Below, in pieces: positions 6,831-62,532 of a stretch of DNA of 64,000 nucleotides; position 1 is the stretch's first letter; each line of letters opens with the position of its first letter. The position numbers were made by a program, and so were the translations under genes. The notes beneath the pieces were generated by a model. That model saw nothing but the letters and a program-made list of their open reading frames with translations. It ran no database searches and was not told the origin of the DNA. The stretch covers positions 157,096 through 221,095 of IMG/VR virus record IMGVR_UViG_3300045999_010033. One strand, given 5' to 3'.

Positions 6831-6890
6831 TTAGGTATATACCTTTAGTTAGTAATAGAATATGCTATATAGCACTTACTAACATAAATA

Positions 6891-10904: not shown

Positions 10905-10914
10905 TATAAATATA
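10905..10914 (-). promoter_or_regulatory. Representative copy of the recurrent ATATTTAT(A) upstream motif (candidate late promoter)
   Basis: Copies at 6884, 10905, 13919, 16971, 19070, 23550, 30805, 34829, 39626, 40828, 42764, 54726, 58113, 61951 and 62835, all just upstream of gene starts. Confidence 0.7.
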
Positions 10915-10974: not shown

Positions 10975-12609
10975 TTAGAGAGTATGTAGACCCTCAACCA
11001 CAATCTTGCCATAGAATTCCGGACGGACTATCTTCTTAGCGTATCTCGTCATAACTCCACGACGTGGTGTGAAGTTAGTCGGGTCATACACAAGCGGAGT
11101 CATAATCAAAGGCACATATGGTGCGTAGACAGCTCCAGTTTCGAAGAAGTTAGAACCTTTGAAACCAAGAAGGATAACGTTCTCAGTCATGTATGGGTTT
11201 TTGTAAACATCATACCTGTTAGAGATTGAACCTACATTGGTTACACCAGCTGCAAATTGAAGAGCATCTTTACCAGGGTTAGCTGAGAAGCCATTCATTG
11301 ATTCGAGGATAGTACATACATCCGGGCTAGCCACGATGAAGTTTGCACCACCACGCATTGTCAACTGATGGATTTTGTTTGATACCTTTTGAAGTTTGAT
11401 ACCAAGTGTTTGATACCAAGTGTTCTTTTGGTAAGCGTTTGCAGATATAGTAGCAGAATCAGGTGCGAAAAGACCGGTTGTTGAATTGTAGTCGTATCCT
11501 ACTCTTGCAGACCAGTAATCAGTAGTCAATGCGTTAGCCTGAAGCATCTCAAGAATTTCCAAATCAATCTCAAGAGAGATGTATTCAGAAAGCATCTGAG
11601 TCAATTCAGCTTCTGCGTCGATACTGTGGTATGCGTTAAGGTCTTGCGCCAATTCAGGAGTCCAAACTGCTTTCAACTTACGAGTTTTAGCAACGATTGG
11701 TTCTGATTTGAGTTCAAGCTCAATTTCAGGAATACCAACATCAGCACCAGTTCTATCTTCAAAATCACCTCTTGAAGTAGCGGTTGGTTGTTTGTGATAA
11801 GATACTGTTGCAGTTGCACCATCGGAAAGGAATGCAGCAGTAGATCCAGTTACAAAGAATTCAACAAAGTTTCCGTTGATATTTGTGTATTGTGGATATA
11901 GTGTGACAGAGCCAGATGTAAGTACAAACGCTCTAACACCATTGAAATCCATTTCGGAAAGAATTGATGAAGATACTGCTACCTTCTTAATACCACCTGC
12001 TGCAACGGATGCTGAAAGTGCGTTTGAATAATCGGTATCTGCCCAAGATGCACTTGTTACAGTTACTCCTGCACCTATACTTCCTGTACCGATTGTTACA
12101 CTAACATCGTTGATGGAATATCCGAAACGACCAGGGCCATAAAGACCTTCTTCTGCTACTTGAGTAGAACCAAGTTTGTTACCTGCAGGTGAAAGAGAAT
12201 CTTTACCAACGGTACCACCTTTACCGAACATTGAAGAACCAGAGAATGCTGGCTTACCTGCTTGGTCGGTTGAATACTTGAAGTCCATGTAGAAGATAAG
12301 ACCTGAAGGTAAGTTCATCGGCTGTACAGAAACGAATTCTTTTGCAGCGATGCTACCAAAGATACGTCTTACAAGCGGAAGAGCTACACCTGCCCATTCT
12401 TCAGAACCAGCTGCGAAGCCAGTCTTTGTTGCTTCATCAAGAAGCTGCTTAGCTTGGTTTTCAAGCAATACTGCCATACCATGCTTTTGTGATTCAGAAC
12501 CTGCTCCTTCAAGAAGGCCTGTTTTTTCCCATTTGGATTTCAAACCCCTAGTTTGCTCAAGCATAATGCTTTGCGGGTTTGCACCATTCATTAATTTTTT
12601 TAAGTCCAT
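10975..12609 (-). CDS. Major capsid protein (T4 gp23-like), 544 aa
   Basis: AVLLENQ, VSVQPMNLPSGLIF, AKTRKLKAVWTPELAQDLNAYHSIDAEAEL, YAPYVPL, F.PRRGVMTRYA. Start reassigned to ATG at 12609 (MDLKKLM). Confidence 0.95.
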   Translation of the reverse strand: MDLKKLMNGANPQSIMLEQTRGLKSKWEKTGLLEGAGSESQKHGMAVLLENQAKQLLDEATKTGFAAGSEEWAGVALPLVRRIFGSIAAKEFVSVQPMNLPSGLIFYMDFKYSTDQAGKPAFSGSSMFGKGGTVGKDSLSPAGNKLGSTQVAEEGLYGPGRFGYSINDVSVTIGTGSIGAGVTVTSASWADTDYSNALSASVAAGGIKKVAVSSSILSEMDFNGVRAFVLTSGSVTLYPQYTNINGNFVEFFVTGSTAAFLSDGATATVSYHKQPTATSRGDFEDRTGADVGIPEIELELKSEPIVAKTRKLKAVWTPELAQDLNAYHSIDAEAELTQMLSEYISLEIDLEILEMLQANALTTDYWSARVGYDYNSTTGLFAPDSATISANAYQKNTWYQTLGIKLQKVSNKIHQLTMRGGANFIVASPDVCTILESMNGFSANPGKDALQFAAGVTNVGSISNRYDVYKNPYMTENVILLGFKGSNFFETGAVYAPYVPLIMTPLVYDPTNFTPRRGVMTRYAKKIVRPEFYGKIVVEGLHTL

Positions 12610-12628: not shown

Positions 12629-13777
12629 TTACTTAATAATACCAGCCAACTTCTTAAATCTATTTGCGAAGTCAGCATTTTCAGAAATTACTTGCTTTTG
12701 TTGAGCAGCGGTAGGTTTTGTTGATTTAACCGCTCTACTTGCAATACCTTCAGCGATAGCCTTTTTAGCAACTTTAGATACTGATGTGTACTTAAAGTTT
12801 TCTGCCAATGTAGAATATACTAATTTGACTTCTCTAACTGATTTTGTTCTATCCAAAGTTTCGATAACTTTAACCTTTTGCTCGTTGGTCATGTTATGTG
12901 CTCTGAACAATTTGTTTGCGAAAAGAAGTTTAGCGTTTAGAAGATTTACTTCATTGATAGTGCCCTGAAGTGATTTGATTGCCTTGTATGCTTGGTTAAG
13001 TTCGGATTTCAACTTTTTGTTTTCTTCCACTTTCTTTTCCATTTCATCATCATCTGCATCGGTCATATCAGCTTCCATTTCACGAAGAATTTCTTCTAAG
13101 TCAATGGTATCATCATCTTTTGCAGTATCATCTTCATCTTCTTCACTAACAACTACTTTTGGGTCTTCACCTTTATCGGTGCCGGCCTCTTCACCATCGG
13201 CTAGGGATTCCATAGCCATCTGGTCATCATCTTCATCTTCAGTTGATTCTTCTTCTGCGAGTGATGATTCCAATTCTCTAATGATTGATTCAAGATCCAT
13301 ATCATCTTCATCATCATACGCTTCTTCTTCATCTCCGGTGATTTCGTATTCCTCATCATTATCGGAATCAGTGTCATCGTCACCGAAATCCATATCATCG
13401 TCGCCGAAATCCATATCATCGGTATCATCTGTGTCTTCTTCTTCAGTAAGATCTTTTACTTTAGAATAGTCATCAAGTTCAGAACCGGGTTCGCCGGATT
13501 CGGTTTCAGTAGAACCACCTTCGAATTCGGTATCGGCATCATAACCCGAAGGTTCTTTCATGTCACCTGCACCGATTTCAGATGAATCTAATTCCTCGGT
13601 CTTCATTTCTTCTTCATCATCGCTCATTTCGGCTTCTGCTCTCAATTTTTGAGATAGAATTGATTGGAGGCGTGGAGTGAAGGCTTCTTCAAGAGCGAGT
13701 TTAGCATTTGCCAAAGCAGTTTCTTTAACGGCTTTAGCATCAGCAATTGCTTGCTTTAACAATTTTGAATTTGCCAT
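12629..13777 (-). CDS. Prohead scaffolding/core protein (gp22-like role)
   Basis: Highly acidic centre, coiled-coil C-terminus (INEVNLLNAKLLF), directly upstream of the capsid gene. Confidence 0.75.
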   Translation of the reverse strand: MANSKLLKQAIADAKAVKETALANAKLALEEAFTPRLQSILSQKLRAEAEMSDDEEEMKTEELDSSEIGAGDMKEPSGYDADTEFEGGSTETESGEPGSELDDYSKVKDLTEEEDTDDTDDMDFGDDDMDFGDDDTDSDNDEEYEITGDEEEAYDDEDDMDLESIIRELESSLAEEESTEDEDDDQMAMESLADGEEAGTDKGEDPKVVVSEEDEDDTAKDDDTIDLEEILREMEADMTDADDDEMEKKVEENKKLKSELNQAYKAIKSLQGTINEVNLLNAKLLFANKLFRAHNMTNEQKVKVIETLDRTKSVREVKLVYSTLAENFKYTSVSKVAKKAIAEGIASRAVKSTKPTAAQQKQVISENADFANRFKKLAGIIK

Positions 13778-13955: not shown

Positions 13956-14390
13956 TTACCAATTTATATTATCTACTTTATTTTTTATAGTTGTTGCAAC
14001 TCCACGTTCTTTTGCTTCTTCGTTCATTGCCTTTGTTAACACCTTTCTTAACTCACGTATAAGTTCATCGTAATTTATATCAGTATTATTTTCGTAAGAT
14101 GTAAGTTGTGCCTTTGTTTCTGGTAGTTCCATTATATAATCTATAAGGTGTGTTCCTGCACCATTTTTTTCAACATATTTATCAATTTTTTTTAAAAAAC
14201 TATTTGTGTTACTAAAGTTTTTTAATATTTTTTTAAGTGCCCTTTGAACTTCAACACTTCTTCCGTTATAATATGCATCTATATTATCTGCAAGTTTACT
14301 AAACAAACCGGTTACCCAAGCTAGTATCAGTATTCCACCTAAAATAGCCACCAATGAAAATTCGTTCAATTGTTTTTTATTTGTTTTCAT
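13956..14390 (-). CDS. Putative head cargo protein with LNE site followed by a hydrophobic helix
   Basis: Likely start ATG 14390: MKTNKKQLNE|FSLVAILGGILILAWVTGLF. Confidence 0.55.
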   Translation of the reverse strand: MKTNKKQLNEFSLVAILGGILILAWVTGLFSKLADNIDAYYNGRSVEVQRALKKILKNFSNTNSFLKKIDKYVEKNGAGTHLIDYIMELPETKAQLTSYENNTDINYDELIRELRKVLTKAMNEEAKERGVATTIKNKVDNINW

Positions 14391-14391
14391 T

Positions 14392-14922
14392 TTATTTGAA
14401 ATATATTTCTTCAAAGTGAAGTATATCCAATAGGTTTGTTGGGTCTATTAATTGTGCCGCATTTAGAAGGTCTGAAAATTCTGTTATTGATTCGAATTGT
14501 CCTTTTCTAAATTCTTCTAGAAAATCAAACGTTGTAATATCTTTTTGCATAATCTCAACTGAATCCGCATTGTATTTTGTGAATAGGTCGTATTCCAATG
14601 CGTAAGATTTATTTACTATATCAATCAATCCTGTGAAATTAATGTTTGGTTTTACGGCCGGCATAGTTGGATTTATATTCCAATCTACAAGGTATTGTTG
14701 AAGTTTTTCGGCATGTCCCAATTCATTGGCTGCTTCTTTTTCAAAGAATGCTGCAGCATTGTTATATCCAACACCTTTGCACCAATTCGATGCAATACGA
14801 TAAAAGAAGTGTGCAGTATATTCATCTACCAATCTATCGTTGATAATCTTTACCGATGCTGGGTTAAGCTCTTTTGGATTTAGAGCCTTTGCCATTGTCA
14901 ATGCTTTGATATTTGTTGCCAT
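14392..14922 (-). CDS. Ferritin-like protein
   Basis: DEYTAHFFY...FFEKEAANELGHAEKLQQYL...ALE...GQFESITE matches non-haem ferritin ferroxidase-centre spacing. Start reassigned to MATNIK. Confidence 0.8.
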   Translation of the reverse strand: MATNIKALTMAKALNPKELNPASVKIINDRLVDEYTAHFFYRIASNWCKGVGYNNAAAFFEKEAANELGHAEKLQQYLVDWNINPTMPAVKPNINFTGLIDIVNKSYALEYDLFTKYNADSVEIMQKDITTFDFLEEFRKGQFESITEFSDLLNAAQLIDPTNLLDILHFEEIYFK

Positions 14923-14926
14923 AAAC

Positions 14927-15184
14927 TTAATGTAATTTTTGTTTTTCTCCTTTAATATAAGAAATAAATGCATTCATTGATGATGAATCTCTAAATACTA
15001 TTTGTTTCTTATCTTTATCGTAACTTTTTATATCTCTTTGAATTTGTGCCAACGCAGGATTTTGATACATTGTAGATAGTGTTTTCCATACTCTTTCCCA
15101 TACTTGCGGGTTTTGAATTGTTAGTGTACTATCGGTTGCCCCATCATTTGCGTTATAATCAAATTCTTCTTTTATTTTTTTTTT
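14927..15184 (-). CDS. Start-less 85-codon open frame (KKKIKEEFDYNAND...GEKQKLH*), the -1 frame continuation of the 15172-15588 gene
   Basis: Open from the A10 run (15175-15184) to TAA at 14927-14929, 4 nt before the ferritin ATG. No ATG/GTG/TTG between the upstream in-frame TGA and the run. Confidence 0.6.
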   Translation of the reverse strand, partial: KKKIKEEFDYNANDGATDSTLTIQNPQVWERVWKTLSTMYQNPALAQIQRDIKSYDKDKKQIVFRDSSSMNAFISYIKGEKQKLH

Positions 15185-15588
15185 AGTCCAAGCCTTTCTT
15201 GCATTTGCTCATGTGAAATATCGGCGATTTCAAAATATCTTCCGAGAACGTGTCCCATATCTTCATATAGGGCTTCAAGTCTTTGTTCTTGCTGATGTGC
15301 TATACTTGATTCTTTTTCAAACTTTTCTTGTAAGGATTTTAATTCTTTCATATTACGTTTGATAGTAACACGGTCAAACCAATCTCCACCCTCTCTCAAT
15401 GTGTATTCTTGTGCAGCATCTGCAATAGCACCAAGTGTTTCGGCAATTTGACGAATATCAGATTTACGATTAATACTTTCTCTATGTGTGCCGAATGTAG
15501 ATATTATTTCCAAAAAGTGTTTTTTAACTTCGGAAGGTAATTGTTGAAACTCTTCGGATTCTTTCAGTAAATCTTTTAATCGTATCAT
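15172..15588 (-). CDS. Putative internal head protein with MIRLKDLLKE leader
   Basis: ORF track; shared leader; ends CTA AAA AAA AAA TAA. Confidence 0.7.
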   Translation of the reverse strand: MIRLKDLLKESEEFQQLPSEVKKHFLEIISTFGTHRESINRKSDIRQIAETLGAIADAAQEYTLREGGDWFDRVTIKRNMKELKSLQEKFEKESSIAHQQEQRLEALYEDMGHVLGRYFEIADISHEQMQERLGLKKK

Positions 15589-15609
15589 TGTTTATATTTA
15601 ATATATTAA

Positions 15610-16164
15610 TTAAAACTCATCATTACCGTACGCCTTAATAAGTTGCATCAATCCATCGTAAGTTTTAGAAGAACCCTCTGGCTTATATTCACCATATCTA
15701 CTATTAAACTTTACTTTGACGGAATCTTTATCAGGATGACTTAACCAAACATTTTGTGTTGTATTTGATGTTTTTACAACAACTCCATTTTTATATTTTT
15801 TTGTATCAAACGCTTTCCACTCTCGGCCGGCTGGCTTTGGCTGTGATTTTGGTCTTTCAAATTTTTGGTATGGCTTATCACCCTTTCCGTACTCGCCGGC
15901 TGCAAATTTATTAACAAGATTATTTAAACCGGTTACATCACCACGATATCCATCTGCGTTTGCAGGAGTTCTCCATCTATCAGTTGCTGCTCCATCTTTT
16001 TTGAACTGCATAGTTCCATATTTTGGATGGCTTAAAGTTACATACTTATCGGCGGTTCTTACTGATACCCCATTTTTGAAATTTAATACACTTTCATTAA
16101 TGGTGGAGATTTTTTTAATCTCCTCACGAATTATTTGTCTTAATTGTGATACTGTGATTTTCAT
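15610..16164 (-). CDS. Putative internal head protein (MKITVSQLRQIIREE leader) with duplicated internal module
   Basis: FKNGVSVRT..YVTLSHP and YKNGVVVKTS..VWLSHP; GLNNLVNKFAAGEY and GLMQLIKAYGNDEF. Confidence 0.6.
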   Translation of the reverse strand: MKITVSQLRQIIREEIKKISTINESVLNFKNGVSVRTADKYVTLSHPKYGTMQFKKDGAATDRWRTPANADGYRGDVTGLNNLVNKFAAGEYGKGDKPYQKFERPKSQPKPAGREWKAFDTKKYKNGVVVKTSNTTQNVWLSHPDKDSVKVKFNSRYGEYKPEGSSKTYDGLMQLIKAYGNDEF

Positions 16165-16190
16165 TGTTTTTTTTTTTGATTAATAAAAAT

Positions 16191-16658
16191 TTATTTTTTA
16201 TGAGATTGGTATCCTTTATTTTTCATCCAATTAGTTAATGCGTATGGATTATCAATGCCCGGCTTATCTTTCATTGCTTTAACGGTTCCTTCCCATCCTT
16301 CGGGTGCCTTTTCGGAAATATTTTCTCCTCTAAATCCACTCATTCCATCTCCTTTCGTATTTCCTTGAAACCCAGCACCTACATCATTTTTTTTTTGACC
16401 GCCGAATGCATCTGCTTGCTTAATCTTTTGGATAGCCCTCATTACTTCTTGCTTATCCATATTAAGGCCATCAATTATTTTTGCAATTACAAGTACTTCT
16501 TTTTTACGAGGAAGATTGTAAGTTTTTAATTGAGATGTAAGTTTTTCTAAAAATCGGTTTACAGCCGTTGGAAGATTAACATCCAAATCATCAAGTGCTT
16601 CTTTTTGAATTGGTTTTTTATTTTCTTTTATAAGGCCTTTTAGTTTTATTGGTTTCAT
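16191..16658 (-). CDS. Putative internal head protein (IKLKGLIKE leader; C-terminal ISE|KAPEGWEGTVKAMK module)
   Basis: ORF track; leader and internal xxE sites. Confidence 0.6.
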   Translation of the reverse strand: MKPIKLKGLIKENKKPIQKEALDDLDVNLPTAVNRFLEKLTSQLKTYNLPRKKEVLVIAKIIDGLNMDKQEVMRAIQKIKQADAFGGQKKNDVGAGFQGNTKGDGMSGFRGENISEKAPEGWEGTVKAMKDKPGIDNPYALTNWMKNKGYQSHKK

Positions 16659-16678
16659 ATTTTTTGATTATTATTTTA

Positions 16679-16951
16679 TTAGTTAACAACTATATCCCAA
16701 TACTTAGAAGTTTCTTTTTTTGGCATTGATGTGTTTGTATATTTTGGACTAAGACTGTATATACGACGTCCTCCATTAATAGTACGAGAATATGTATAGT
16801 ATTTCGGATTTGGTAGATCATTTGTTCCATCAACTTCAAGTGGTAGCATGCCTCGTTTACGTCTTTGCCTATGTAGCGGATTATGCTTTTCGGCTTCATT
16901 CAGTTTTTGTATTCTATTAGGAATGAGTTTCATTAATTGCATGCTAATCAT
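16679..16951 (-). CDS. Small basic putative head protein (KLNE|A site)
   Basis: ORF 19 nt downstream of an ATATTTATA motif. Confidence 0.5.
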   Translation of the reverse strand: MISMQLMKLIPNRIQKLNEAEKHNPLHRQRRKRGMLPLEVDGTNDLPNPKYYTYSRTINGGRRIYSLSPKYTNTSMPKKETSKYWDIVVN

Positions 16952-16982
16952 TTTATTTTTCTTTATATAGTATAAATATACG

Positions 16983-17573
16983 TTAGTTCAATTCAACAAT
17001 TATTTCACGCATTAGGTCTTGTGCTTTACACCACTTACCACATTCGTCTGCAATTTTCTGCCATTGCTTACTCTCATTCATTGGTGCCATAAATGCTCCA
17101 TGCGTAGACGGGTTCGATACGAAGTCCCAGCCAACCAATTCGAAGTCGTCTTGCACCATTACCGTGCCATCCCTTTGCTCATTAACTGAACCAAGTCCAC
17201 GTGAACTAATACCAAGACGTATATTATTTTTAAGCAATTCTTTTAAGATATTGCCCGATGGTGTTGAAAGAATTTCTACCACTCCACAAACATCATCCCC
17301 TTCCCACCATATTTCACGAATATTGTGTGATACATTTTTAAGCTCGATTACTGGAGAATCCGGATGGTCTAATTCACCAAGTGCACGTCTTTCCTTAATC
17401 AATTGCTTATATTTTTCACACTCACGCTCTAATATCTCTTTTGGATAACGGCGATTGTTTTGATTGGGTGCACCTGCTCTTTGCAAAACGCCTTTAACAA
17501 GAAAAGTACCATTAGATTCTTCTTTGAGTTTTGCTTCGAATAGGTGGGTTTCTATTAATAGTTTTTTATTCAT
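16983..17573 (-). CDS. Prohead maturation protease (T4 gp21-like)
   Basis: NNRRYP, ALGELDHP, NVSH, LGISSRGLGS, DFVSNPST motifs. Confidence 0.93.
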   Translation of the reverse strand: MNKKLLIETHLFEAKLKEESNGTFLVKGVLQRAGAPNQNNRRYPKEILERECEKYKQLIKERRALGELDHPDSPVIELKNVSHNIREIWWEGDDVCGVVEILSTPSGNILKELLKNNIRLGISSRGLGSVNEQRDGTVMVQDDFELVGWDFVSNPSTHGAFMAPMNESKQWQKIADECGKWCKAQDLMREIIVELN

Positions 17574-17574
17574 T

Positions 17575-17769
17575 TTACATTCTTAATCTACCTTCAGACT
17601 TTGCTTGATATGCTTTGTCTACGGCATTAAAAAATTTCTTTTTTTCTTCGTCACTCATTGAGTTAATATCTTTCCCAGTTTTATCAAGCATAGTTTTGAA
17701 CAATTCTTGATAATCCTGCTCTTCTTTAATTACTTCTCTAACGAGTTCTTTTAGTTGTTGTAAGTTCAT
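17575..17769 (-). CDS. Small prohead core-like protein (64 aa)
   Basis: LKELVREVIKEE, MSDEEKKKFF; sits between portal and protease like T4 gp67/68. Confidence 0.55.
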   Translation of the reverse strand: MNLQQLKELVREVIKEEQDYQELFKTMLDKTGKDINSMSDEEKKKFFNAVDKAYQAKSEGRLRM

Positions 17770-17781
17770 TTTATTGTGGTT

Positions 17782-18192
17782 TTATTCTGATATTTTTCTA
17801 ATATGTTGTTCTAACTTAATCAACCTTTCTTTTATTTTCAAAATGTTTCCATTTGTACGTTTCCAAAATTGGTCATTAGATACTCCGTTTTCTTGCTTCA
17901 ATTTACCATACCAATTTAGAAATTTTTCCATTTCTGCCAATTGCTTATTGATGTTAGAAACGCCTTTACCGATTTTTCGGTGAGCAGGGATATCTTCATT
18001 TTTTAGTTCTAACCAACGATTTTCTTTTACAACGGTATACCCAGTTAGGTCAGCTTGTTGTTTCGCACTTTGCTTTGTATCTCCTCTTTTTTTGAATGCG
18101 TTTGGTGACTGGTATCCTTGAACGTTCCCTGTCACATTCATTTCTCTTACAACCTTTCTTATAAATTCTTTTAATTTACTTTTGTGTTGCAT
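17782..18192 (-). CDS. Hypothetical head-associated protein
   Basis: VVRE|MNVTGNVQGYQSPNAF and VKE|NRW sites. Confidence 0.55.
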   Translation of the reverse strand: MQHKSKLKEFIRKVVREMNVTGNVQGYQSPNAFKKRGDTKQSAKQQADLTGYTVVKENRWLELKNEDIPAHRKIGKGVSNINKQLAEMEKFLNWYGKLKQENGVSNDQFWKRTNGNILKIKERLIKLEQHIRKISE

Positions 18193-19048
18193 TTTTCAAT
18201 TCTTTTATTAGTTCGTATGCCATCATAAGCGCGGATACGTGTTGCTCTTTAACACGTTTATTCTGCTTTATTTTTTTTATCTGCCCTATCGTTTCTACTA
18301 ATTTTATTTTTGTAACTTTATCGGTAATCTTCTTTCCAATTTCATTTAGGGATTGTGTAATTTTATTTACTTCACTTTGAATGTGATTTGAAAAGCCGGA
18401 ACTATTAGTCATTCCATTAATATATTCTCGTAGTAAAACCTTTTGCTCATTACTTAGGTCTTTATACTTTGTATTAAAACTTTCTATTAAAATTTTATAC
18501 GAAAGAGCCCTTACAGTTTCATCTTGTTTTTTGAATTGTTCCAATACGGCATCTTTTATTTTTGCATCTTTATTCTGTATTGATTTATTTATTATGTTTT
18601 CTGCAATTGTAAATCTTGAAGATACCACATCGGTTGGATCTAAAATTTCGGATTCATTTATTGATTCAAAAATTTTATAAATTGATGCAAGAACTTTGTA
18701 GTTTGAAACCGATGATTTTAATAAATCTTCTATATTATACGATTCTCTTATTTTTTTTACTAAATTATATTTTTCTTTTGTCAATTTAGCTTCATCAAGA
18801 CGTTTGCGTGCTTCACAAACGGTATCAATAAACTTTTCTGCTTTTGCTTCAGAATTATATTTTTCGTTTATAAGATACTGATATAATTTTAATTCTTTTG
18901 AAAGTTCTTTTTTAGAATTAAAAAATTCTTGTAGGATTTTTTCTGCTTTAGATTTATTTTCCGACATAATTTCGGAGGTGATTTGTCTAAGCAGTAATTC
19001 AAAAATGAATCCTGTATTTTTGAACTTAGAATGTTTAATTTTTTTCAT
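18176..19048 (-). CDS. Hypothetical helical protein downstream of portal
   Basis: ATG 19048 MKKIKHSKFKNTGFIFELL; preceded by ATATTTATA motif. Confidence 0.65.
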   Translation of the reverse strand: MKKIKHSKFKNTGFIFELLLRQITSEIMSENKSKAEKILQEFFNSKKELSKELKLYQYLINEKYNSEAKAEKFIDTVCEARKRLDEAKLTKEKYNLVKKIRESYNIEDLLKSSVSNYKVLASIYKIFESINESEILDPTDVVSSRFTIAENIINKSIQNKDAKIKDAVLEQFKKQDETVRALSYKILIESFNTKYKDLSNEQKVLLREYINGMTNSSGFSNHIQSEVNKITQSLNEIGKKITDKVTKIKLVETIGQIKKIKQNKRVKEQHVSALMMAYELIKELKNATQK

Positions 19049-19087
19049 CAAAGGGATAATTTATCTCTTTATAAATATATTTATTGA

Positions 19088-20836
19088 TTATTTAACAGCA
19101 GATTTGGTATCTGTTAGTATTATTTTTTTACCACCAAGCATATCTTTGTATATTTCTTTATAACTTACTTTACGTGGTTTGTATTTTACAGAACCTTCTT
19201 TTTGTTTTAGAGTTTTAATCCCAAGTGGGTCGCGACCAAGTGGATGATCATCTTTACCATATCTAACCGGGTCTTTTGGTCTTCCAACTTTTCCTTCTTC
19301 TTCTAATTCATCTTTAATTTTTTGAATTTCTTCTTCAACATTGGTTGGTTCTTCTGTTCCGGTTTCTTTAGCAGGATCAGTTCCTTGTGTTTCAATTTGT
19401 GTCAATCTGAACGCTTGCTTTGTATCTTCCAATACATCAATTGTCATGTCATCTTGTTCATCTTGCGCAAATTTCATAATATTTTCATACATCCACTTTT
19501 TAGAAAACAATTTTGTTTGTTGCATAGATTGTATAAGAGATACCTTTGATGTATATAATTCTATTTGCTCTTGCTCATATATTTTTGATGGAATAGTAAG
19601 TTCTAATTGAAAATCCAAATCTGCCGCGTTATCCATACCCTGCGCATATAAATGAACTATTGCTATCTTTGTCAATTCGGAAATAAGAACTTTTTGTATT
19701 CTTTCGATGGTTTTGGCGAACCTTACATCTTGCGCTGCCAATGTTGCTTTTCCGTTTACATCTTCTTCATATCCCAAATGTGATTTTGGAATTTTAAGAG
19801 CTGCGAACATTTTTCCTTTTAGGTAGTTGATATCATCTATTGCCTGATATTCCATGCCCTTCAAAGTATCTATGCTCGTACCACTATCGCTACCGCGGAC
19901 AGGAAGATAATAATCCTCAATAATATTTTGAATATTATATTTAAGATTGTAATCTCCGGTTTTTTCATCTACAAATGGTGTTTTTTTACTGCTGTTAATG
20001 ATTCGTTGCATATAATTATCAACTTCAGTTGGTGGTATATTACCAACATCAACTTTGAATATACGTTTTTCGGGAGCACGCATAATACGATGTATTAACA
20101 TAGCATCCTCCATAAGAGTTAGTTGTTTCCAAACCCGTCTTGCACCTTCTATCATTGATTTTCCATAAGGAAGAAAATTAGAATCAGAATGCATTCTGAA
20201 ATGCGCAATTTCATAATTTTCATATTCTTTTTTATTAGAAGCAGAAGACCCTCCGTATGGGTTTGTGTATGGTGCATATACAAACTTTACACGTTGTGGA
20301 TTTTCTATATCAAAGTTTTCAACACGTGTAACTTCATATACCGATATGGGAATTACATTAACAATTCCAAGTTCAGGTGCTACTTCTAATTGTAAAAAGA
20401 AATCACCATACTTTACCAAGTTTCTTGTCCAAGGCCAAAGTGTGAATTCTATGTTTACAATATCATAAAATAAGTTATGAAGAATTTGTTTTACATTTTC
20501 ATCTGAACAATGTATTTTCAGTACATCTCCATGTTCATTTTTTGTTGTACTTTCATCTGCGTAAATATCTAATGCCGCAGCAAGAATAGGGTCATGATCC
20601 ATTGAATCATAATCTCTAAATAGGTCAGCACGAACTTGCTGATACGACATTGCCGATTCCAACATTCCACCACTATATTGTGGGGTCTTCAATTTCATAA
20701 AACGGTCTACAAGGTTAGTCGTCATTGATTGATATTCATCAGTATCAATGACCCTTACGCCCTTTTTAGTTCTACGAATAATTGTGTTTGTAGAAAATAG
20801 TTTTTGTAACCTTCCAAAAATGGTTTTATCTGCCAT
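19088..20836 (-). CDS. Portal protein (T4 gp20-like)
   Basis: QLTLMEDAMLIHRIMRAPEKRIFKVDVGNIP, EDYYLPVRG..GTSIDTLKG, ALKIPKS. Confidence 0.93.
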   Translation of the reverse strand: MADKTIFGRLQKLFSTNTIIRRTKKGVRVIDTDEYQSMTTNLVDRFMKLKTPQYSGGMLESAMSYQQVRADLFRDYDSMDHDPILAAALDIYADESTTKNEHGDVLKIHCSDENVKQILHNLFYDIVNIEFTLWPWTRNLVKYGDFFLQLEVAPELGIVNVIPISVYEVTRVENFDIENPQRVKFVYAPYTNPYGGSSASNKKEYENYEIAHFRMHSDSNFLPYGKSMIEGARRVWKQLTLMEDAMLIHRIMRAPEKRIFKVDVGNIPPTEVDNYMQRIINSSKKTPFVDEKTGDYNLKYNIQNIIEDYYLPVRGSDSGTSIDTLKGMEYQAIDDINYLKGKMFAALKIPKSHLGYEEDVNGKATLAAQDVRFAKTIERIQKVLISELTKIAIVHLYAQGMDNAADLDFQLELTIPSKIYEQEQIELYTSKVSLIQSMQQTKLFSKKWMYENIMKFAQDEQDDMTIDVLEDTKQAFRLTQIETQGTDPAKETGTEEPTNVEEEIQKIKDELEEEGKVGRPKDPVRYGKDDHPLGRDPLGIKTLKQKEGSVKYKPRKVSYKEIYKDMLGGKKIILTDTKSAVK

Positions 20837-20865
20837 AGTTAATCTTTATTATATATATACTATTT

Positions 20866-21975
20866 TTACCACTTTCTGCATGACCAGTAACGCGCTTTCC
20901 ATCTTGGGCCAGGATTATCACAGTTGTGTCTAGCTCTGAATGATTTGCGTCTTTCAGGATTTGATTTTTTAATACGCATATTTGGGTCTCCGAAGTTTAC
21001 TTTAACAACGTTACCTTTATCATTTTTAACGTACACTTTAAATTTTTTAACATCACCCTGCATTGGTTTGCCGAGCTTTACTTTTCTACCCTGATATTCT
21101 GCTTCAAAAACGCAACCGCATCCTGCTTCATTTAGTGTTCGGTTATATTCTCTCATAAAGACAATAAAGTCTTTGTAGTCATCATAGTTTTCAACATCGT
21201 ATTCTACGGGTTGAACTCTTCCGTAATTAATTTCGGAATCTTTATCTCTACGTTCGGGATGATCTGGATATTCTTCTTTCATAGCTTTTTGTTTTGATAT
21301 TTCGATAGCAGCCAATTGTTTTTGCGCTGCAGATTTACTTGAATGTGTTCCTAATCGGTCTCCACCTTTCTTTGGATATACTGCGTACTTATCTCCTACT
21401 TTCTTAATAGTTTCTTTAACCGGCTCATATCCTTTTCTCTGATTATCTTTTGTATCGGATTGATATCCTGGCTCTACTTCTCTATCATCATCAAAATCAT
21501 ATGTATCTAATTCGGCAGGATATCCATAATCGGGTGTATATGAAGAACTCTTATGATGATGCAAAAAATTACCATCACCGGTCCCATGTGGTATGTGATT
21601 GCGGGAGTTAATTGCTTCAGAAACCGGTACACAATTTGGAACTTCTTTACCATTTTTGTCTTTCATTCCAACTTGCTTATATCCATCCCAGCATGGCCCT
21701 TCCAATAACTCATCATCATCTTTATCTAATGGATTTTCGACTGGAATACGTCCACTTGGCTGTACCCATCCACCTGCGGAAGGGTCGTATCCTTCATTAC
21801 AAGTACGCCATCCACCACCCTTTGATTTATAGTTTTTTGCAGCCCATCCATTTGCATATGCACTTGGGTAAACATCAAATTTACGTTTTGCCGCAGCCTT
21901 TGATGCTGACCATTTTGCTGGGTCAGTCGGGCAATTCTTTTCTAAAAATAATTCTAATCTTTCTTCTATTGTCAT
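20866..21975 (-). CDS. Modular polyprotein-like head protein (alternating basic and acidic modules)
   Basis: Modules YPSAYANGW, GPCWDGYKQVGMK..VPNCVP, IKKVGDKYAV..LGTH, and FGDPNM..RRKSFRARHNC..RYWSC, separated by xxE sites. Confidence 0.7.
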   Translation of the reverse strand: MTIEERLELFLEKNCPTDPAKWSASKAAAKRKFDVYPSAYANGWAAKNYKSKGGGWRTCNEGYDPSAGGWVQPSGRIPVENPLDKDDDELLEGPCWDGYKQVGMKDKNGKEVPNCVPVSEAINSRNHIPHGTGDGNFLHHHKSSSYTPDYGYPAELDTYDFDDDREVEPGYQSDTKDNQRKGYEPVKETIKKVGDKYAVYPKKGGDRLGTHSSKSAAQKQLAAIEISKQKAMKEEYPDHPERRDKDSEINYGRVQPVEYDVENYDDYKDFIVFMREYNRTLNEAGCGCVFEAEYQGRKVKLGKPMQGDVKKFKVYVKNDKGNVVKVNFGDPNMRIKKSNPERRKSFRARHNCDNPGPRWKARYWSCRKW

Positions 21976-21976
21976 T

Positions 21977-22618
21977 TTAGTTTACGGATTTAGATTTAGT
22001 ATCACGACCCGCCTGTCGGGCTTTTCTACCTGCACAGTGTGCTTTTTGGCTGAATCCTTTGGGGTTATCGCAATCAATTGATTTTTTGTAGCCTTTTGTC
22101 CATTTTTCATTTAGTCGGTTTTCGTGCTTTATGATTAACTCACCCAATACTTCTATTAGTCCGACCAATCTTTGAAACCCGATTTGGTCCATTTGAACTT
22201 TACCACCACATATTTCTTCCATATAACCATTAAATTCTTCACGAGCATCTTCTAAATTAAAACCGCCTTCGGCTGCTTTTTTATAGTGTGGAAGTTTTAC
22301 AACAAAATGATGATAGGTAAGAATTGCTACTCCACCCTTTTCTTTTGCATCTTTAGTTATTTTAGTAGCACCTTCTAATCTTTTCTTTGCAAAATCTTCA
22401 AAACTTTCTATTTTTGGAGAGTTTGATTTAACTAGATTTGCGGAAGTTTTTTTCTTTTCATCACCATAGGATTTACCCATAGCCTGCCCAGCGGTAGTTT
22501 CTCTTCCAGCTATCGTCACTTTTGTAGATGGACGTATATCATGCTGCTTTGCATAAGCATCAAATTCGGCTTGAGATTTAAATTCTAATTCGTTCAATAT
22601 ATCTTTAAGTCTAATCAT
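21977..22618 (-). CDS. Putative internal head protein (MIRLKDILNE leader; C-terminal LNE|KWTKGYKKSIDCDNPKGFSQKAHC module)
   Basis: Start reassigned to ATG 22618. Confidence 0.65.
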   Translation of the reverse strand: MIRLKDILNELEFKSQAEFDAYAKQHDIRPSTKVTIAGRETTAGQAMGKSYGDEKKKTSANLVKSNSPKIESFEDFAKKRLEGATKITKDAKEKGGVAILTYHHFVVKLPHYKKAAEGGFNLEDAREEFNGYMEEICGGKVQMDQIGFQRLVGLIEVLGELIIKHENRLNEKWTKGYKKSIDCDNPKGFSQKAHCAGRKARQAGRDTKSKSVN

Positions 22619-22619
22619 T

Positions 22620-22859
22620 TTATTTAATGGCTTTACCAAACTCTTGTGAAAAGTCCGTATCTTGTGATAAATCAATTGTTTGAACTCGGCACTTTTTACA
22701 TTCGTGTTTTTGTGTAAGTATTTCTATTACTTGTTTAGCTTCACTCATTGATTTAGCTTTTGTAAAAAGTATTTGTTCATCCTTTTTGCCAGGAGGAACA
22801 CCCCAAATAATATATTCAGTTTTAGTGGTTTCTTTTAATATATCTTTAAGTCTAATCAT
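22620..22859 (-). CDS. Putative internal head protein (MIRLKDILKE leader)
   Basis: First 23 nt identical to those of the 22618 gene. Confidence 0.65.
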   Translation of the reverse strand: MIRLKDILKETTKTEYIIWGVPPGKKDEQILFTKAKSMSEAKQVIEILTQKHECKKCRVQTIDLSQDTDFSQEFGKAIK

Positions 22860-23200
22860 GTCGGCGGATTATATTTTTTATCACTTCCCTTTTTATCCCA
22901 ACTAACTCTTACTGGCTTTTTACCTTTACTGCCATCACCTTTATCGCCACGTCCTGCTTTGTTTTGTTTTGCACGTTTACGTCTTACGAAACTTGCTCTA
23001 CCTTTTTTTCCAAGCTTTTTTGCCGCTGCCGATGAAAGACATGCCGCATATGCTTCACCTTCTTCGCCGGCTCCACACTTTCCAACACGTTTACCACTGG
23101 AATCATATCTATCCCAGCCACCACCTCCTTTACCTCCCCATTTGCCCTTTCCGAACCACTTACGGAGGTCTTCGTCTAAAAGGTCAAATAGTTTAATCAT
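22856..23200 (-). CDS. Basic Gly/Lys-rich putative internal head protein (MIKLFDLLDE leader)
   Basis: DLRKWFGKG...KCG...ACL...FVRRKR; very basic after the leader. Confidence 0.65.
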   Translation of the reverse strand: MIKLFDLLDEDLRKWFGKGKWGGKGGGGWDRYDSSGKRVGKCGAGEEGEAYAACLSSAAAKKLGKKGRASFVRRKRAKQNKAGRGDKGDGSKGKKPVRVSWDKKGSDKKYNPPT

Positions 23201-23523
23201 TAGAATACGGAATTGATTTGAGATGAAACCTCTTTACCATACTTTGATTGACATTGTTTCATCAATTCATTATAGATATTTGTTCTCAAATCTATAAGCT
23301 CTTTTGGAGTATGTCCAAACTCTTTCTGCATATCCAACATACTATTCAAAATGTTTTCAAATGCTCCCATTTTCATAAATTTGGCGAACTCAAGTACCGC
23401 TTCGGTATGCGCATTTCTATCGGTTAATTTTTCTATCTTTTTAACGATAGGGTCTACATTGATCGCTTCTTTTAATCCGGTAACTACCTTTGTTTCTGAT
23501 AGTATATTAGTTAGTTTAATCAT
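23200..23523 (-). CDS. Putative internal head protein (MIKLTNILSE leader)
   Basis: Leader plus a second LKE|A site; first gene after an ATATTTATA motif. Confidence 0.65.
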   Translation of the reverse strand: MIKLTNILSETKVVTGLKEAINVDPIVKKIEKLTDRNAHTEAVLEFAKFMKMGAFENILNSMLDMQKEFGHTPKELIDLRTNIYNELMKQCQSKYGKEVSSQINSVF

Positions 23524-23562
23524 GCTATTTTATTTTAAGTGTTTCAATCTATAAATATACAA

Positions 23563-25167
23563 TTATCCTAATAACCATCTTATATCTTCAATCTCTCCGT
23601 TATTTCCATAAGAAATTTCATATGGGTTATTTTGTAAGTGGTTTTTAGTATAAACACTTTCGTATTGTTGTATTTTAGCCGAACTTAACATAGACTTTGT
23701 AAGGTCTACTCCTTCATTTCTAAGCCTCAATGCAGTATTTCTAACCCACAGTCCTATCGCCATAGCCATTGTCAAGTCATCGTTGTAGCCCTTCATTGCT
23801 TCCGCTCTACCATTAAACCAAATAAATGTAAATAATTCTTCTATCATACGAGAAGACCGTATTAATATCTCTTTTTCTCTAAGATACGTATCTAATGCAG
23901 AAATAATAAGTGGTCGCGTCCTTTGTGTTACCGAAAATCCAGCAACCATCTTGCGTTCCTCACGATAATATTTGTTGGTCATTTGCCTTTCTACATCAAT
24001 GTATTTCAAGTCATTACTCATGTAAAATAGATTACCATATCCACGATTAATGATTTGTTGTATGGCGGCCCAACCTACGTTTGAGTTTTCCACAACTAAT
24101 AGGGCATTATTGTATTCGGTAGCAAGTGAAACTAATAGGTTTCCAAAATCTTTTGTATTGATTTTACCACGATATTCTGCAACTTGTGAGCAATTATCTA
24201 AATCTATAACTTGTGCAGTTGAAAAGTCATTTGAATCACCACGTGAAACGTCCGCAGCAACCATATAGTTTCTTGTATAATCCGGATGTTCCCATCTCCA
24301 TAGGTTTCCATCGAAACCAGTTTTTTCAATTGGATCGATTACCCAAGTTTGCTTATACCACATTAGAAGTTGTGGGTCTATCACAGTATCACCGGAACTT
24401 ACAAAATCACAATCACACTCTTGCGCAGCTCCTTTTACACCAAGAACACGTGTTTGATCATCTCTCCACGTTTGATTTCTTTCAGGGTGCTCTGTCCAAT
24501 GAAGCATTATATTATTGAATCCATTTATTCCACTTTCTCCATCTACCCACATTTTATGAAACCAATTACCAACACCATTTGGAGTTGATAGTACAATAGC
24601 AGAACCACCAGTTGAAAGTGTAGATTGCGCCGATAGCCAAATTTCATCAATATCTCTAATGAACGCTGCCTCATCAATTACAAGCAATGATAGGGCTTCA
24701 GAACGTCCTGCATCAGGAGATGATGTGATTGCTTTAACTTGCGAACCATTTTTTAGTTTAAGAGATAATTTATTATCTTCAACTGATGCGGATGAGCCAT
24801 CTCTCAACCAAATTGGCAAAAGATCGTGCATCACTCTTACTTTTTCTACAAGGTTTTTTGCAACTGTTACTTTTGTAGCAATAACAAGTGCGTTAAAATC
24901 CGCATTGAATATCATTTTCCATAAAATAAATCCTGCGGATAACGTGGATAATCCAAGTTGTCTACTCTTTAAAATTATATTATAACGATTATCTTTAAAA
25001 TCAGTAATACATTTTTCTTGAAATGGAAAAAGGTGAAATGGAATTTTACCACGAGTAGGGTGCTGAATGACACAATACTTTTTCATAAAGTATATTGGGT
25101 CTAATGCACATTTTTTATACTCATCGGCAATTAGGTCTTTCAGGCTTCTATTTGGATTTATTGGCAT
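23563..25167 (-). CDS. terL: Terminase large subunit (T4 gp17-like)
   Basis: LFPFQ Q-motif, KSRQLGLST Walker A, LLVIDEAAF Walker B, LSTPNG, nuclease DVSRG..DFS and DDLTMA. Confidence 0.95.
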   Translation of the reverse strand: MPINPNRSLKDLIADEYKKCALDPIYFMKKYCVIQHPTRGKIPFHLFPFQEKCITDFKDNRYNIILKSRQLGLSTLSAGFILWKMIFNADFNALVIATKVTVAKNLVEKVRVMHDLLPIWLRDGSSASVEDNKLSLKLKNGSQVKAITSSPDAGRSEALSLLVIDEAAFIRDIDEIWLSAQSTLSTGGSAIVLSTPNGVGNWFHKMWVDGESGINGFNNIMLHWTEHPERNQTWRDDQTRVLGVKGAAQECDCDFVSSGDTVIDPQLLMWYKQTWVIDPIEKTGFDGNLWRWEHPDYTRNYMVAADVSRGDSNDFSTAQVIDLDNCSQVAEYRGKINTKDFGNLLVSLATEYNNALLVVENSNVGWAAIQQIINRGYGNLFYMSNDLKYIDVERQMTNKYYREERKMVAGFSVTQRTRPLIISALDTYLREKEILIRSSRMIEELFTFIWFNGRAEAMKGYNDDLTMAMAIGLWVRNTALRLRNEGVDLTKSMLSSAKIQQYESVYTKNHLQNNPYEISYGNNGEIEDIRWLLG

Positions 25168-26504: not shown

Positions 26505-29500
26505 TTATTCATAAAATATTCCTAAAAGCTGATTTAATGGAGCGAATGTGCCTGTAAGTTTATAAGTCTTTCCGTTATAAACAAATACAATACCTTCTGC
26601 TGCTACTATTTTATCTACCCCACCCAATGAGTTTAATCTTTCTAATTCGTTTTTGAATTTTTTAATTATAGATGTGTCTCCGGTTTGTTTTACTTTTTGT
26701 GCAACTGAATCCAATTTCGTTTTCATAGCACGAATGGCAGTATCGGGGTGCACAGTTATTACTGATGTTACAAATTGTAAAACTTCAGAACCTACTCCCA
26801 AAAATATTTCTTCAAACGGTTTTATATTATCACGTTGTTGTTTTGGAACATTTATCTTATCGTGCTCTATTGTCCAATTTTGCAATGTTTTATCTGATAT
26901 TGTATTTAACCTAAAAGATTTTTCTCCAAATCCCCATCTGCGGATTAGTGCTTCTTTTGTAAGTTTATCGGGCTTAACGGGTGATTGCTTATCTATAAAA
27001 TCTGCCCACCATGCGTAGTGATAATCCGAAACGGAAGCAGAATCAGAAAGTCCAAATTTAGATTGTAGTTTGTTTAATTTTCCAAACCAATATCCTTGCT
27101 TCGATGAAAGCTCTTTACTTTTTGGAAGTTCTAAAACCGGAGGACCTGCTATCGTATATTTGGATTGCACATTTGCGTTGATTTGTTTTATCATGCCTGC
27201 CAATACTCTTGCGCTAGATTGGTCGGCGCTTATTGCCTTACCCGCATCATCATAACACACCGTTCCATGAAATACTAATAATGCCTGTCCGTATGGTATT
27301 ACGTTTACTGATTCTGGCCATATAACTTCAAGATTCATAAAACATTTCCCATTATTAAATATCTTTTCTTTTTGTTTTTCTGAAAGCCCACCTATTGCGG
27401 CGTTAAGGTCTTTCATTGCAAAATTATACGCATCGGTTAATCCACCACGACCTGCAAATTTAGATGCTACATCTTCTATACCCATTGCGTTTGCTCCTGC
27501 ATTTGCAAGATGTCCTTTGTTACGTGCGGCAATCAATCTTCCATTCTTCCAACTTATTGCCAAAGCCTGTCCGTCGGTTTTTTCACGAGCCAATTCCAAA
27601 CGACCACTTAGTGCGCCAGATATAATACGTTTAAGGTCACCAAACGTAAGCCCCATATCATCAAATGGATGTGACATGTGTCCATACGCACCACCTTCTT
27701 GTAATAGAGAAACTATACGATGCTCATATCCTCTTTCACGAATTACATCAACCGGTCTAATTGCCTTTGGTTTTACATATACATCTGGATAAGAGTATGG
27801 GTTTGGTCTTGAATTAAATGGATACATTTCCCATTTATCTGCTTTATCTTTTGCATATGCATCTCCTTTAGATGGATGAATTGTACGTTTAGCAGGTCCG
27901 TTTTCCTCTCTTGGATTATTAACCGGTATATTTTTTGCTGCCTTTTTAGCATCACGTTTTGAACTATATTCTAATACATCATATCCTACTATTTCAGCGT
28001 GCTTTTTTCCATATTTATCGTGCTTTTCCCAATCAGGAGAATATGGAGATCTGAAACTTTCCCCATTACTTGTCCCATCTACTACGGCTTCATTTACAAA
28101 ATTCTTTTTATTGAATTTAGTTGGTTTAAAATCAGTACGTGGTAAGTTCTTAACACGCCAAATTACATATGGTTGGTCTTGCTCATCATCACCGAATATA
28201 GTATCCGCAGTTGGGAAATCAATTTGAATATATCCGCCATTAGTAAACCACTCATCGGATTTATTTATACCATCATTGTTACCCAATTTTCTTTTATATC
28301 CTTTTGGTAAAAACATACCATCGGGTTGGTCATCATTAAATGCACCCTGAATACTTGTTGCTTCGTTTATAATTCCCTCTTGGAATATCTTTTTATTAAT
28401 CTTACCATATTCACGCATTAGTATTCCGGCCACCGCATGGGCTTTATTTTCAACAGAAGAGCCAGTCTTACCATCCTCTGCCCTATCTTTAATAATGCCC
28501 ATTTCATCTTGCTTACGATGTACCATTTCATGCGCAATCGTTCTTAAAATATCGGCAGTTAGGCGACCTTCGGTTGAAACGAATATTTCTTTTGTATTAT
28601 CATCGTATCCACCAAGAGATGTTTGTGATTCTGCGAACTCACCACCACCTACTAAATTGATTTTAGGTCTTTCATTTAGTTTCAATCGCTTTGTAGCATA
28701 TTCAACGAAATGATTTATTGATTCGGTTTTACTATCCAATGCATCTTCGGTTTCTCCGGTTTCGGGATTGTGATGTGAAAACGTTTTGTGCCAAATTTTA
28801 GATTTTTCTATTGCCCTTGCAGGATTAAGTTTATCTATTTTTTGTTGTGGTGATAATCTTCTATTAAACATTCCGGTAGCAGGAACATAATGTTCTTCAT
28901 TCAATAAATCTGCTGCGTTTCTTTTTGGTTCTTCTTTTTTATAACTTTTTATAGATTGTAATAATTGCGCATCGGTTAATTTGTATGTTTCTACACGTTT
29001 AATAACTTTTTCTAAAAAGTTTATTATAAATTTATTGTTACCATCTTGGGTTGATGAAATTTCGAACAAACCCATTGTTGCAGTAGATAGTGCCGCACCA
29101 CCACCCGCTGCTTGCGCACCACCAAATCCCAATGTTTCAAGTGCAGCATGCTTCACAATATCTTTTCCCAAATGAATACCAAACCCACCAAATCCATGTG
29201 TAAAAACACCAACTGAACCTTGTGCTGCTGCACTTGCAACTCCTAACGCACCTTGACCAGCGCTAACCGCTTTGGCCGCCGCTACACCTGCGCCACCTAA
29301 CATCATAGACCCCATTAACAATCCAACATCAATTGCAAAATGTTTGACATGATGTAATTGTTCTTTTCGTTTTTCATCGGAATAATCCCACTTTCCGGTT
29401 TGCTTATTTTTTACAGAACCAATCTTTTGTCCATTAGCCAATGCTTTAACTGCATCAACAGTTCCACCAATCATTTCTTTTTTGTGATGCGCCCACTTTT

Positions 29501-39611: not shown

Positions 39612-39637
39612 ATTGTTTTGTTTTATATAAATATAAG

Positions 39638-42743: not shown

Positions 42744-42792
42744 AGTGTATTGTTATCTTTTGTTATAAATATATTATTCTAAAAAATAAGTA

Positions 42793-60621: not shown

Positions 60622-60637
60622 AATATTAATTATTACC

Positions 60638-60669
60638 TAAATATAACAAAATTTTATCAAAAAACCAAA
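60638..60669 (-). promoter_or_regulatory. Bacteroidota-type promoter (TTTG-N20-TATATTTA) for the uvsE-def-sigma block
   Basis: One mismatch to TAnnTTTG, correct spacer. Confidence 0.55.
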
Positions 60670-60671
60670 TA

Positions 60672-62418: not shown

Positions 62419-62532
62419 AGTAATTAAGTTTTTAAGGTTATTTAATGCCTATTATAATTCAATTACTATACCAAATAAAAAAGTATGACAATACGTCATA
62501 CTTTTTAAGTTTTACCTGAAATAATTTCTGAA

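Follow-up and report, generated by a model that had tools for sequence, protein, structure and literature searches.

The capsid targeting sequence of bacteriophage T4 is the textbook address tag among phages; it has served to pack foreign proteins into phage heads, and it is by way of this sequence that IPI and other anti-restriction proteins enter the host along with the DNA. To our knowledge, it has so far been described mainly from T-even coliphages, in which a few payloads are carried per phage. In this study, we analyzed a stretch of 64,000 nucleotides (hereafter called the window) at positions 157,096 to 221,095 of the IMG/VR virus record IMGVR_UViG_3300045999_010033, and we describe a decapeptide, M-I-[KR]-L-K-D-[IL]-L-x-E, with which a number of otherwise unrelated proteins begin in the window and in related viruses. 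This decapeptide (the tag) is likely, with a rough probability of 0.7, to be a T4-type capsid-targeting propeptide that would be removed by a protease of the S77 family, leaving the mature proteins in the head. All positions given below are those of the window, and the whole gene region of the tag is on the minus strand.

For incorporation into the T4 head, the first ten residues of IPIII suffice (PMC9026906, PMC9958956, PMC3012670), and within the targeting sequence, residues 4 and 7 matter for targeting and residues 8 and 10 for processing (PMC9026906). The internal proteins of T-even phages are a diverse set having the targeting sequence alone in common (PMC3012670, PMC9026906), and a review has proposed this sequence as a general protein-loading route of T4-like phages (PMC9026906). 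The prohead protease gp21 cuts after L/I-x-E, by which 65 residues are removed from gp23, 10 from gp24, and 9 from gp21 itself by self-cleavage (PMC9026906, PMC9958956). In the T4 genome (NC_000866), the N-termini read MKTYQEFIAE in both IPII and IPIII, MKTFKEF...ITE in IPI, and MAKINELLRE in gp24. Processing in T4 is prevented when position 10 is Asp.

Tagged genes of the window

Five minus-strand genes of the window, with their starts at 23523, 23200, 22859, 22618, and 15588, open with M-I-[KR]-L-x-[DN]-[IL]-L-x-E. Four of them form a tandem array: namely, the first (23200–23523) encodes a protein of 107 residues with the leader MIKLTNILSE (23494–23523) and a predicted mature product of ~11 kDa with an isoelectric point (pI) of 7.8; the second (22856–23200) a Gly/Lys-rich protein of 114 residues with MIKLFDLLDE (23171–23200) and a mature pI of 10.4; the third (22620–22859) a protein of 79 residues with MIRLKDILKE (22830–22859); and the fourth (21977–22618) a basic protein of 213 residues with MIRLKDILNE (22589–22618). 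The fifth gene (15172–15588) encodes a protein of 138 residues and starts with MIRLKDLLKE (15559–15588), which is nearly the same peptide as in the genes starting at 22859 and 22618 but is written in other codons. A further gene (16191–16658; 155 residues, basic) has a shifted leader, MKPIKLKGLIKE, of 12 residues ending in I-K-E, and its orthologues carry other leader variants. All six of these leaders had been pointed out in an initial annotation made from the letters of the window, and all are present at those minus-strand starts; so is the identity, also claimed there, of the first 23 nucleotides between the genes starting at 22859 and 22618, after which the two sequences diverge.

The degenerate DNA pattern for M-I-[KR]-L-x-[DN]-[IL]-L-x-E was matched five times in the window as compared with none in 100 dinucleotide-preserving shuffles, and the tag is carried by none of the ~45 window genes outside 13956–23523. 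Predicted mature products of the tagged window genes are 8–23 kDa in size and mostly basic (pI 7.8–10.4; one at 5.8). When the leaders were taken off, no significant similarity was detected by BLASTP among the window payloads (best E 0.059), in agreement with the unrelatedness that had been proposed, and no match to these payloads was found in Pfam, PHROGs, and the ESM Atlas. The family of the 138-residue protein is the most widely conserved among the tagged families and is usually encoded directly downstream of the protease; the tag and Glu10 are retained down to 35–43% identity, and the segment after Glu10 is variable in length and sequence. An AlphaFold2 model of this family (mean predicted local distance difference test score of 67.5) predicts a helical body with a poorly ordered leader.

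In its interpretation, the initial annotation was borne out in silico as to a portable N-terminal tag that ends in a protease-type L-x-E and precedes unrelated payloads in a T4-like phage, but not in counting several looser leaders as members of the same family. One of them, MNLQQLKELVREVIKEE, heads a single orthologous family, which is conserved well past the supposed leader and lies upstream of the protease in relatives; in another, MKTNKKQLNE, a hydrophobic membrane-type segment comes next. Also, the N-terminus of the protease, MNKKLLIE, is a different element from the tag, although it does align with the self-cleavage site of T4 gp21 as described below. A bare [LI]-x-E is common in any case: 36% of N-termini have one among their first 20 residues, as compared with 26% of internal stretches. 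The possibility that the looser leaders make up a second portable tag, x-Q-L-K-E-L-V-R-x-V-V-K-E-E, was tried and rejected; 26 of its 27 regular-expression matches came from one orthologous family upstream of the protease, with conservation running past the supposed leader.

Distribution of the tag and its predicted cleavage site

The window phage is a distant, uncultured T4-like phage, and its closest cultured phages by portal identity are Microcystis phage Mel-JY01 (49%), Flavobacterium phage Immuto (47%), and Rhodothermus phage RM378 (34%). We scanned IMG/VR with a degenerate DNA pattern for M-I-[KR]-L-K-D-x-L-[KN]-E and obtained at least 120 stretches. Among the matches listed, 118 of the 124 tag copies are at the first in-frame ATG of an open reading frame (ORF), homologues of window genes (30–100% identity) occur in 88 of the 120 tag loci, and the 118 ORFs fall into at least 56 payload clusters, which were formed by BLASTP on leaderless sequences from ORFs of at least 50 residues. 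A slightly looser definition of the tag gave at least 168 distinct proteins in 84 unrelated payload clusters across the clade, far beyond the window.

As a set chosen independently of the tag, we also collected 53 loci by a portal search of IMG/VR (73–100% identity; 394 distinct genes). A loose pattern specifying only hydrophobic residues at positions 4, 7, and 8 and Glu10 was found in 15 of these 394 genes, and all of the 15 read M-[IL]-[KR]-L at the positions left unconstrained. When the degenerate tag pattern was searched for in 596 Gb of bacterial and archaeal genomes, only 21 stretches were hit; at least three of them are phage contigs of this clade binned into metagenome-assembled genomes (MAGs), and most of the others are internal or off-pattern chance matches. 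Because clade homologues are found at most tag loci and the tag is rare in cellular genomes, these scans indicate that the tag is specific to this virus group. The mis-binned clade contigs (L184, L192, L199, and L201) are in MAGs labelled Pelagibacter, Methanobacteriota (an archaeon), Flavobacteriales, and Flavobacteriaceae, and no host assignment was made because these labels conflict.

Among cultured phages, Mel-JY01 (PP395634.1) has the leaders MIKLKSLLQE, MIKLKSLLKE, MIKLMSLVTE, and MGILKQLLKE, with tagged products encoded at 60276–60926, 62056–62718, and 96164–96964 of its record; a BLASTN search with the 30-nucleotide tag against cultured phages returned mostly noise, yet it pointed to this phage. 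At 62733–62789 of Mel-JY01 (6001–6057 of the locus L176), directly after a tagged gene, an unannotated ORF of 18 codons starts with MIKLKQLLNE and soon reaches a stop; it resembles what would remain of a leader after the turnover of cassettes, or else a truncated gene.

When 51 representatives were aligned, conservation was confined to the columns of the tag. Most payloads have no Pfam family, and the few with one are of unrelated folds, namely NUDIX, RNase T-type exonuclease, Zeta-toxin/AAA_33 kinase, NT5C nucleotidase, FMN reductase, and helix-turn-helix (HTH)/sigma region 4; the tagged proteins range in length from ~60 to more than 400 residues. Homologous payloads are furthermore found behind variant leaders, leaders of other length, or no leader at all. 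For example, the window protein beginning MIKLFDLLDE|DLRKWF... has a counterpart elsewhere beginning MNEDLRKWF..., in which just the three residues MNE precede the same payload. Other members of the clade also have tandem arrays, with as many as four tagged genes.

In the 124 tag copies, synonymous variation is seen wherever a codon position is degenerate (ATA/ATT/ATC, six Leu codons, GAT/GAC, and GAA/GAG). Also, the DNA upstream of the ATG of tagged genes shows no conservation, and the conserved block begins at the ATG and ends at Glu10. For these reasons, we regard selection on the tag as acting at the level of the peptide.

The residue following Glu10 was then examined with one vote given to each of the 84 payload clusters. 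At residue 11, Ala, Gly, or Ser accounts for 33.8 of the clusters as compared with 16 expected and with 10–16 at positions 12–14, and Pro, which is found in 5–6.4 clusters at each of the positions 12, 13, and 14, occurs at residue 11 in none of the 84. In the T4 sites as well, the residue after Glu is small (A, A, S, A, and T). This pattern, modest as its statistics are, agrees with a scissile bond that joins residue 10 to residue 11.

His70 and Ser123 of the window protease are invariant with T4 gp21 and align with both of the Ala substitutions in the T4 gp21 structure (PDB 5JBL). The N-terminus of the window protease, MNKKLLIE|T, aligns with the self-cleavage site of T4 gp21, MNEPQLLIE|T, and the T4 gp23 site, LTE65|A, aligns with E59|A60, which is invariant in the capsid proteins of the window phage, Immuto, and Mel-JY01. 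From these alignments, the specificity of the T4 protease has probably been kept in the window phage. The parallel with T4 is, indeed, closer than had been claimed in the initial annotation, comprising the same tag length, the critical positions, the conserved gp23 and gp21 sites, and the catalytic residues.

Head module and neighbouring features

The neighbours of the tagged genes are as the initial annotation had described, namely a terminase, a T4-type portal, an S77 protease, a scaffold-like protein, and a gp23-type capsid protein, all on the minus strand. The large terminase (23563–25167) marks the boundary of the head module, which contains the portal of the T4 gp20 family (19088–20836; PF07230, 5e-72), the prohead protease of the gp21/S77 family (16983–17573; PF03420, 3e-29) with the catalytic His70 and Ser123 present, and the major capsid protein of the gp23 family (10975–12609; PF07068, 3e-77), of which the start was set at the ATG at 12609. 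A capsid maturation site, L-D-E59|A60 (12430–12441), is predicted from the alignment to the T4 gp23 cleavage after Glu65. The position of gp22 is occupied by a candidate scaffold of 382 residues (12629–13777), which is very acidic (pI 4.1) and has 10 L/I-x-E sites. A conserved protein of 290 residues adjoining the portal (18176–19048) has 13 L/I-x-E sites versus 5.8 expected and is kept in Immuto and Mel-JY01; this candidate prohead-core protein may be degraded by the protease. Immediately upstream of the protease, at the position of T4 gp67/gp68, a protein of 64 residues (17575–17769) represents one orthologous family without the portable tag.

A protein of 369 residues (20866–21975, minus strand) is a mosaic with a Cys-rich C-terminal domain of ~115 residues. 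This domain recurs in relatives behind many N-terminal parts, one of which is headed by a tag (MIKLKKILNE), and some of these relatives have a DLRKWF-type N-terminal module, which is the payload of the window gene starting at 23200. There is extensive domain shuffling between the terminase and the portal.

The motif TATATTTATA is found seven times in the window versus 1.3 expected, six times on the minus strand and once on the plus strand. One minus-strand copy (23550–23559) is immediately upstream of the four-gene tagged array, and the others are at 10905–10914, 16971–16980, and 19070–19079, each preceding a gene of the head and tail region, and at 39626–39635 and 42764–42773. The six coding-strand copies are 15–35 nucleotides upstream of the starts of structural genes, and the motif recalls the T4 late promoter, TATAAATA; we regard TATATTTATA as a candidate late promoter. 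A link between this motif and the tagged genes was considered and dropped, since its presence before the window array and its lack of enrichment across loci (given below) lend no support either way.

Several other genes of the neighbourhood are worth recording. A ferritin-like gene (14392–14973, minus strand; PF00210, 3e-19) is located within the head module, with the tagged genes on one side and the scaffold on the other; its relatives begin at MATNIKALT, so that the gene probably starts at a point within the listed ORF. On the terminase side of the module, a protein of 1431 residues (26505–30800, minus strand) has an N-terminus resembling cytidylyltransferases (..GRFQPFHKGH..), and its homologues are frequent neighbours of tagged genes at other loci. 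At the beginning of the window (1–6890, minus strand), a single ORF of more than 2276 codons extends past the window start; its N-terminus is tail-fibre-like and is accompanied by long collagen-like repeats of Gly-Ser-Ser and Gly-Thr-Ala, which account for the raised content of guanine and cytosine (0.45–0.48) and the spurious Pro-Leu-rich ORFs on the plus strand.

Interpretation and comparison with known systems

Binding to the core, cleavage, packaging, and injection are steps that we infer from homology to T4. Late in infection, the tag would dock a protein onto the scaffolding core of the assembling prohead, and the serine protease of the gp21 family would cut after Glu10 of the L-x-E motif, so that a mature protein, in most cases small and basic, is set free within the head. 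This protein would then remain there with the DNA and probably enter the next host cell with it. Because ten residues would suffice for targeting, the tag could precede almost any gene, which would account for the dozens of unrelated families, often in tandem arrays, that carry it in the clade. A more tentative proposal, to which we would give somewhat less than even odds, is that the near-invariant decapeptide marks the full set of head-loaded and injected proteins of a large, uncultured, aquatic clade of T4-like phages, with at least 84 unrelated families including NUDIX hydrolases, exonucleases, kinases, and nucleotidases.

Several points weigh against the tag being a capsid-targeting propeptide. 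Virion proteomics or cleavage data for any member of the clade were not found in the searchable literature. Tagged genes are often outside the head module on long contigs and in Mel-JY01, where they are beside replication genes; this is weak evidence, however, because the T4 ip genes are scattered as well. Among 17 loci picked by eye on contigs longer than 50 kb, ~3 are in the head module proper, and position relative to the head genes was not used as evidence because hallmark structural genes are probably over-represented on the short contigs in IMG/VR. Among the payloads are enzymes of a housekeeping type (NUDIX, nucleotidase, and kinase), of which the need for packaging is not obvious, and further L/I-x-E sites are present within payloads. 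Across loci, TATATTTATA shows no enrichment immediately before tagged genes (4 of 162 versus 117 of 1530 other genes). Also, over a length of ten residues, likeness to T4 sequences is no proof of homology.

The same targeting and cleavage might serve a different end, in that the tagged proteins would mostly act in assembly, as parts of the core or scaffold or as determinants of size in the manner of T4 gp67/gp68, and would be degraded or expelled before DNA packaging, leaving no injected arsenal. Indeed, five of the six tagged window genes are between the terminase and the portal or just after the protease, as are gp67/gp68 in T4, the sixth (at 16658) being the one with the shifted leader; furthermore, the 138-residue family keeps its synteny with the protease throughout the clade, and four L/I-x-E sites are found within its sequence. 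Nonetheless, 84 unrelated and fast-turnover payload clusters including enzymes are unlike the needs of a conserved assembly machine, and most of the window payloads have few or no L/I-x-E sites besides that of the tag itself, so that we consider a general role in assembly unlikely. Some of the tagged proteins may still be core or scaffold components that are degraded and not injected, and the expandable effector-delivery system proposed in the initial annotation therefore exceeds the evidence.

We find it improbable that the decapeptide is a recognition tag for a process unrelated to the capsid, such as timed degradation by a host protease or binding of another phage or host factor. Such a process would suit the tagged genes located away from head genes on long contigs and in Mel-JY01, the nucleotide-metabolism enzymes and HTH or sigma-like proteins among the payloads, and the late-promoter-like motif not being enriched before tagged genes. 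However, the tag can be matched at each position to the T4 targeting sequence and to the gp24 propeptide, its last residues are the motif recognized by the type of protease that the same module encodes, and all phages in which it was found are related to this T4-like clade.

A shared start could also be mainly an element of DNA or translation without any role of the peptide: namely, the boundary of a recombination cassette or an AT-rich initiation region. The 23 nucleotides identical between the 22859 and 22618 genes suggest recent copying of leader DNA, and the orphan 18-codon leader ORF in Mel-JY01 and the AT-rich codons of the tag point in the same direction. Yet the peptide is fixed while its codons vary synonymously at every position, conservation starts exactly at the ATG with no conserved DNA upstream, and an expression element would need neither Glu10 nor the exclusion of Pro at residue 11. 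Recombination at the tag is compatible with a function of the peptide but does not explain it, and an element acting only at these levels is thus very improbable. Finally, a single old paralogous family, with its bodies diverged past recognition and its N-terminus kept without any grafting, is hardly credible in spite of the tandem arrays suggestive of local duplication and of most payloads being orphans with no detectable family, since the payloads include unrelated defined folds (NUDIX, RNase T-type exonuclease, P-loop kinase, NT5C, and FMN reductase), have homologues behind variant or missing leaders, differ several-fold in length, and share no BLASTP similarity beyond the N-terminus.

If the tag is a capsid-targeting propeptide, and if cleavage and packaging hold true, a motif of ten residues would flag the injected proteins of uncultured phages, which are prime candidates for counter-defence, and phages that infect non-model aquatic bacteria could be engineered with a packaging tag that already exists. 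If the tag indeed marks the full set of head-loaded and injected proteins, it would be a simple handle by which first-strike effectors (i.e., candidate anti-defence proteins) could be listed straight from metagenomic sequences, and the T4 targeting grammar (positions 4, 7, and 8 and Glu10) would prove to be ancient and common to the T4 superfamily. For T-even phages, it is already established that diverse internal proteins share a conserved targeting sequence. What is new is the particular tag, of which no mention was found in the searchable literature, and that it stays nearly invariant throughout a distant clade of environmental phages; the large payload repertoire and the tandem arrays are new as well.

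Among known systems, the cargo-loading peptides of encapsulins resemble the tag in being short, portable, terminal peptides that bring diverse enzymes into a shell of the HK97 fold; unlike the tag, these peptides are usually C-terminal and are not removed, and the encapsulin is a cellular nanocompartment with no delivery to another cell. In the Dar system of phage P1, anti-restriction proteins inside the head are delivered with the DNA and protect it (PMC9024508, PMC12810830), but the capsid and protease are of another lineage, and a shared N-terminal decapeptide was not found described for Dar. The giant phages phiKZ, 201phi2-1, and SPN3US have many head-internal proteins that are cut after Glu by a distant homologue of gp21; their cut sites, however, share a short Glu-ended motif with few other determinants, and a near-invariant decapeptide has not been described (PMC9026906, PMC5694885).

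The closest match in sequence is the propeptide of T4 gp24, which agrees with the consensus MIKLKDLLKE at 5 of 10 residues (M1, K3, L7, L8, and E10) and differs conservatively at positions 4, 6, and 9; some members of the clade even begin with MAKLKDL[IV]KE, resembling gp24. The gp24 propeptide differs in belonging to one structural protein and not being portable, and a gp24 paralogue was not seen in the window. In the way of its use, the tag is most like the leaders of T4 IPII and IPIII: both are of 10 residues, with hydrophobic residues at 4, 7, and 8, an acidic residue at 6, and Glu at 10, and both are on unrelated, mostly small and basic proteins of a phage that has a head module of the gp20/gp21/gp22/gp23 type. 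The two nonetheless differ in sequence (MIKLKDILNE here versus MKTYQEFIAE), and the window phage is very distant from T4, with its portal matching at the family level. Unlike the T4 internal proteins, furthermore, the tag system described here is known from sequences alone, its genes are arrayed within the head module, and its payload repertoire is far larger (84 clusters sampled) and has recognizable enzymes in it. The comparison suggests the same device as in T4, used in a very distant and environmentally widespread T4-like clade with a nearly invariant tag and a much larger and fast-changing set of payloads.

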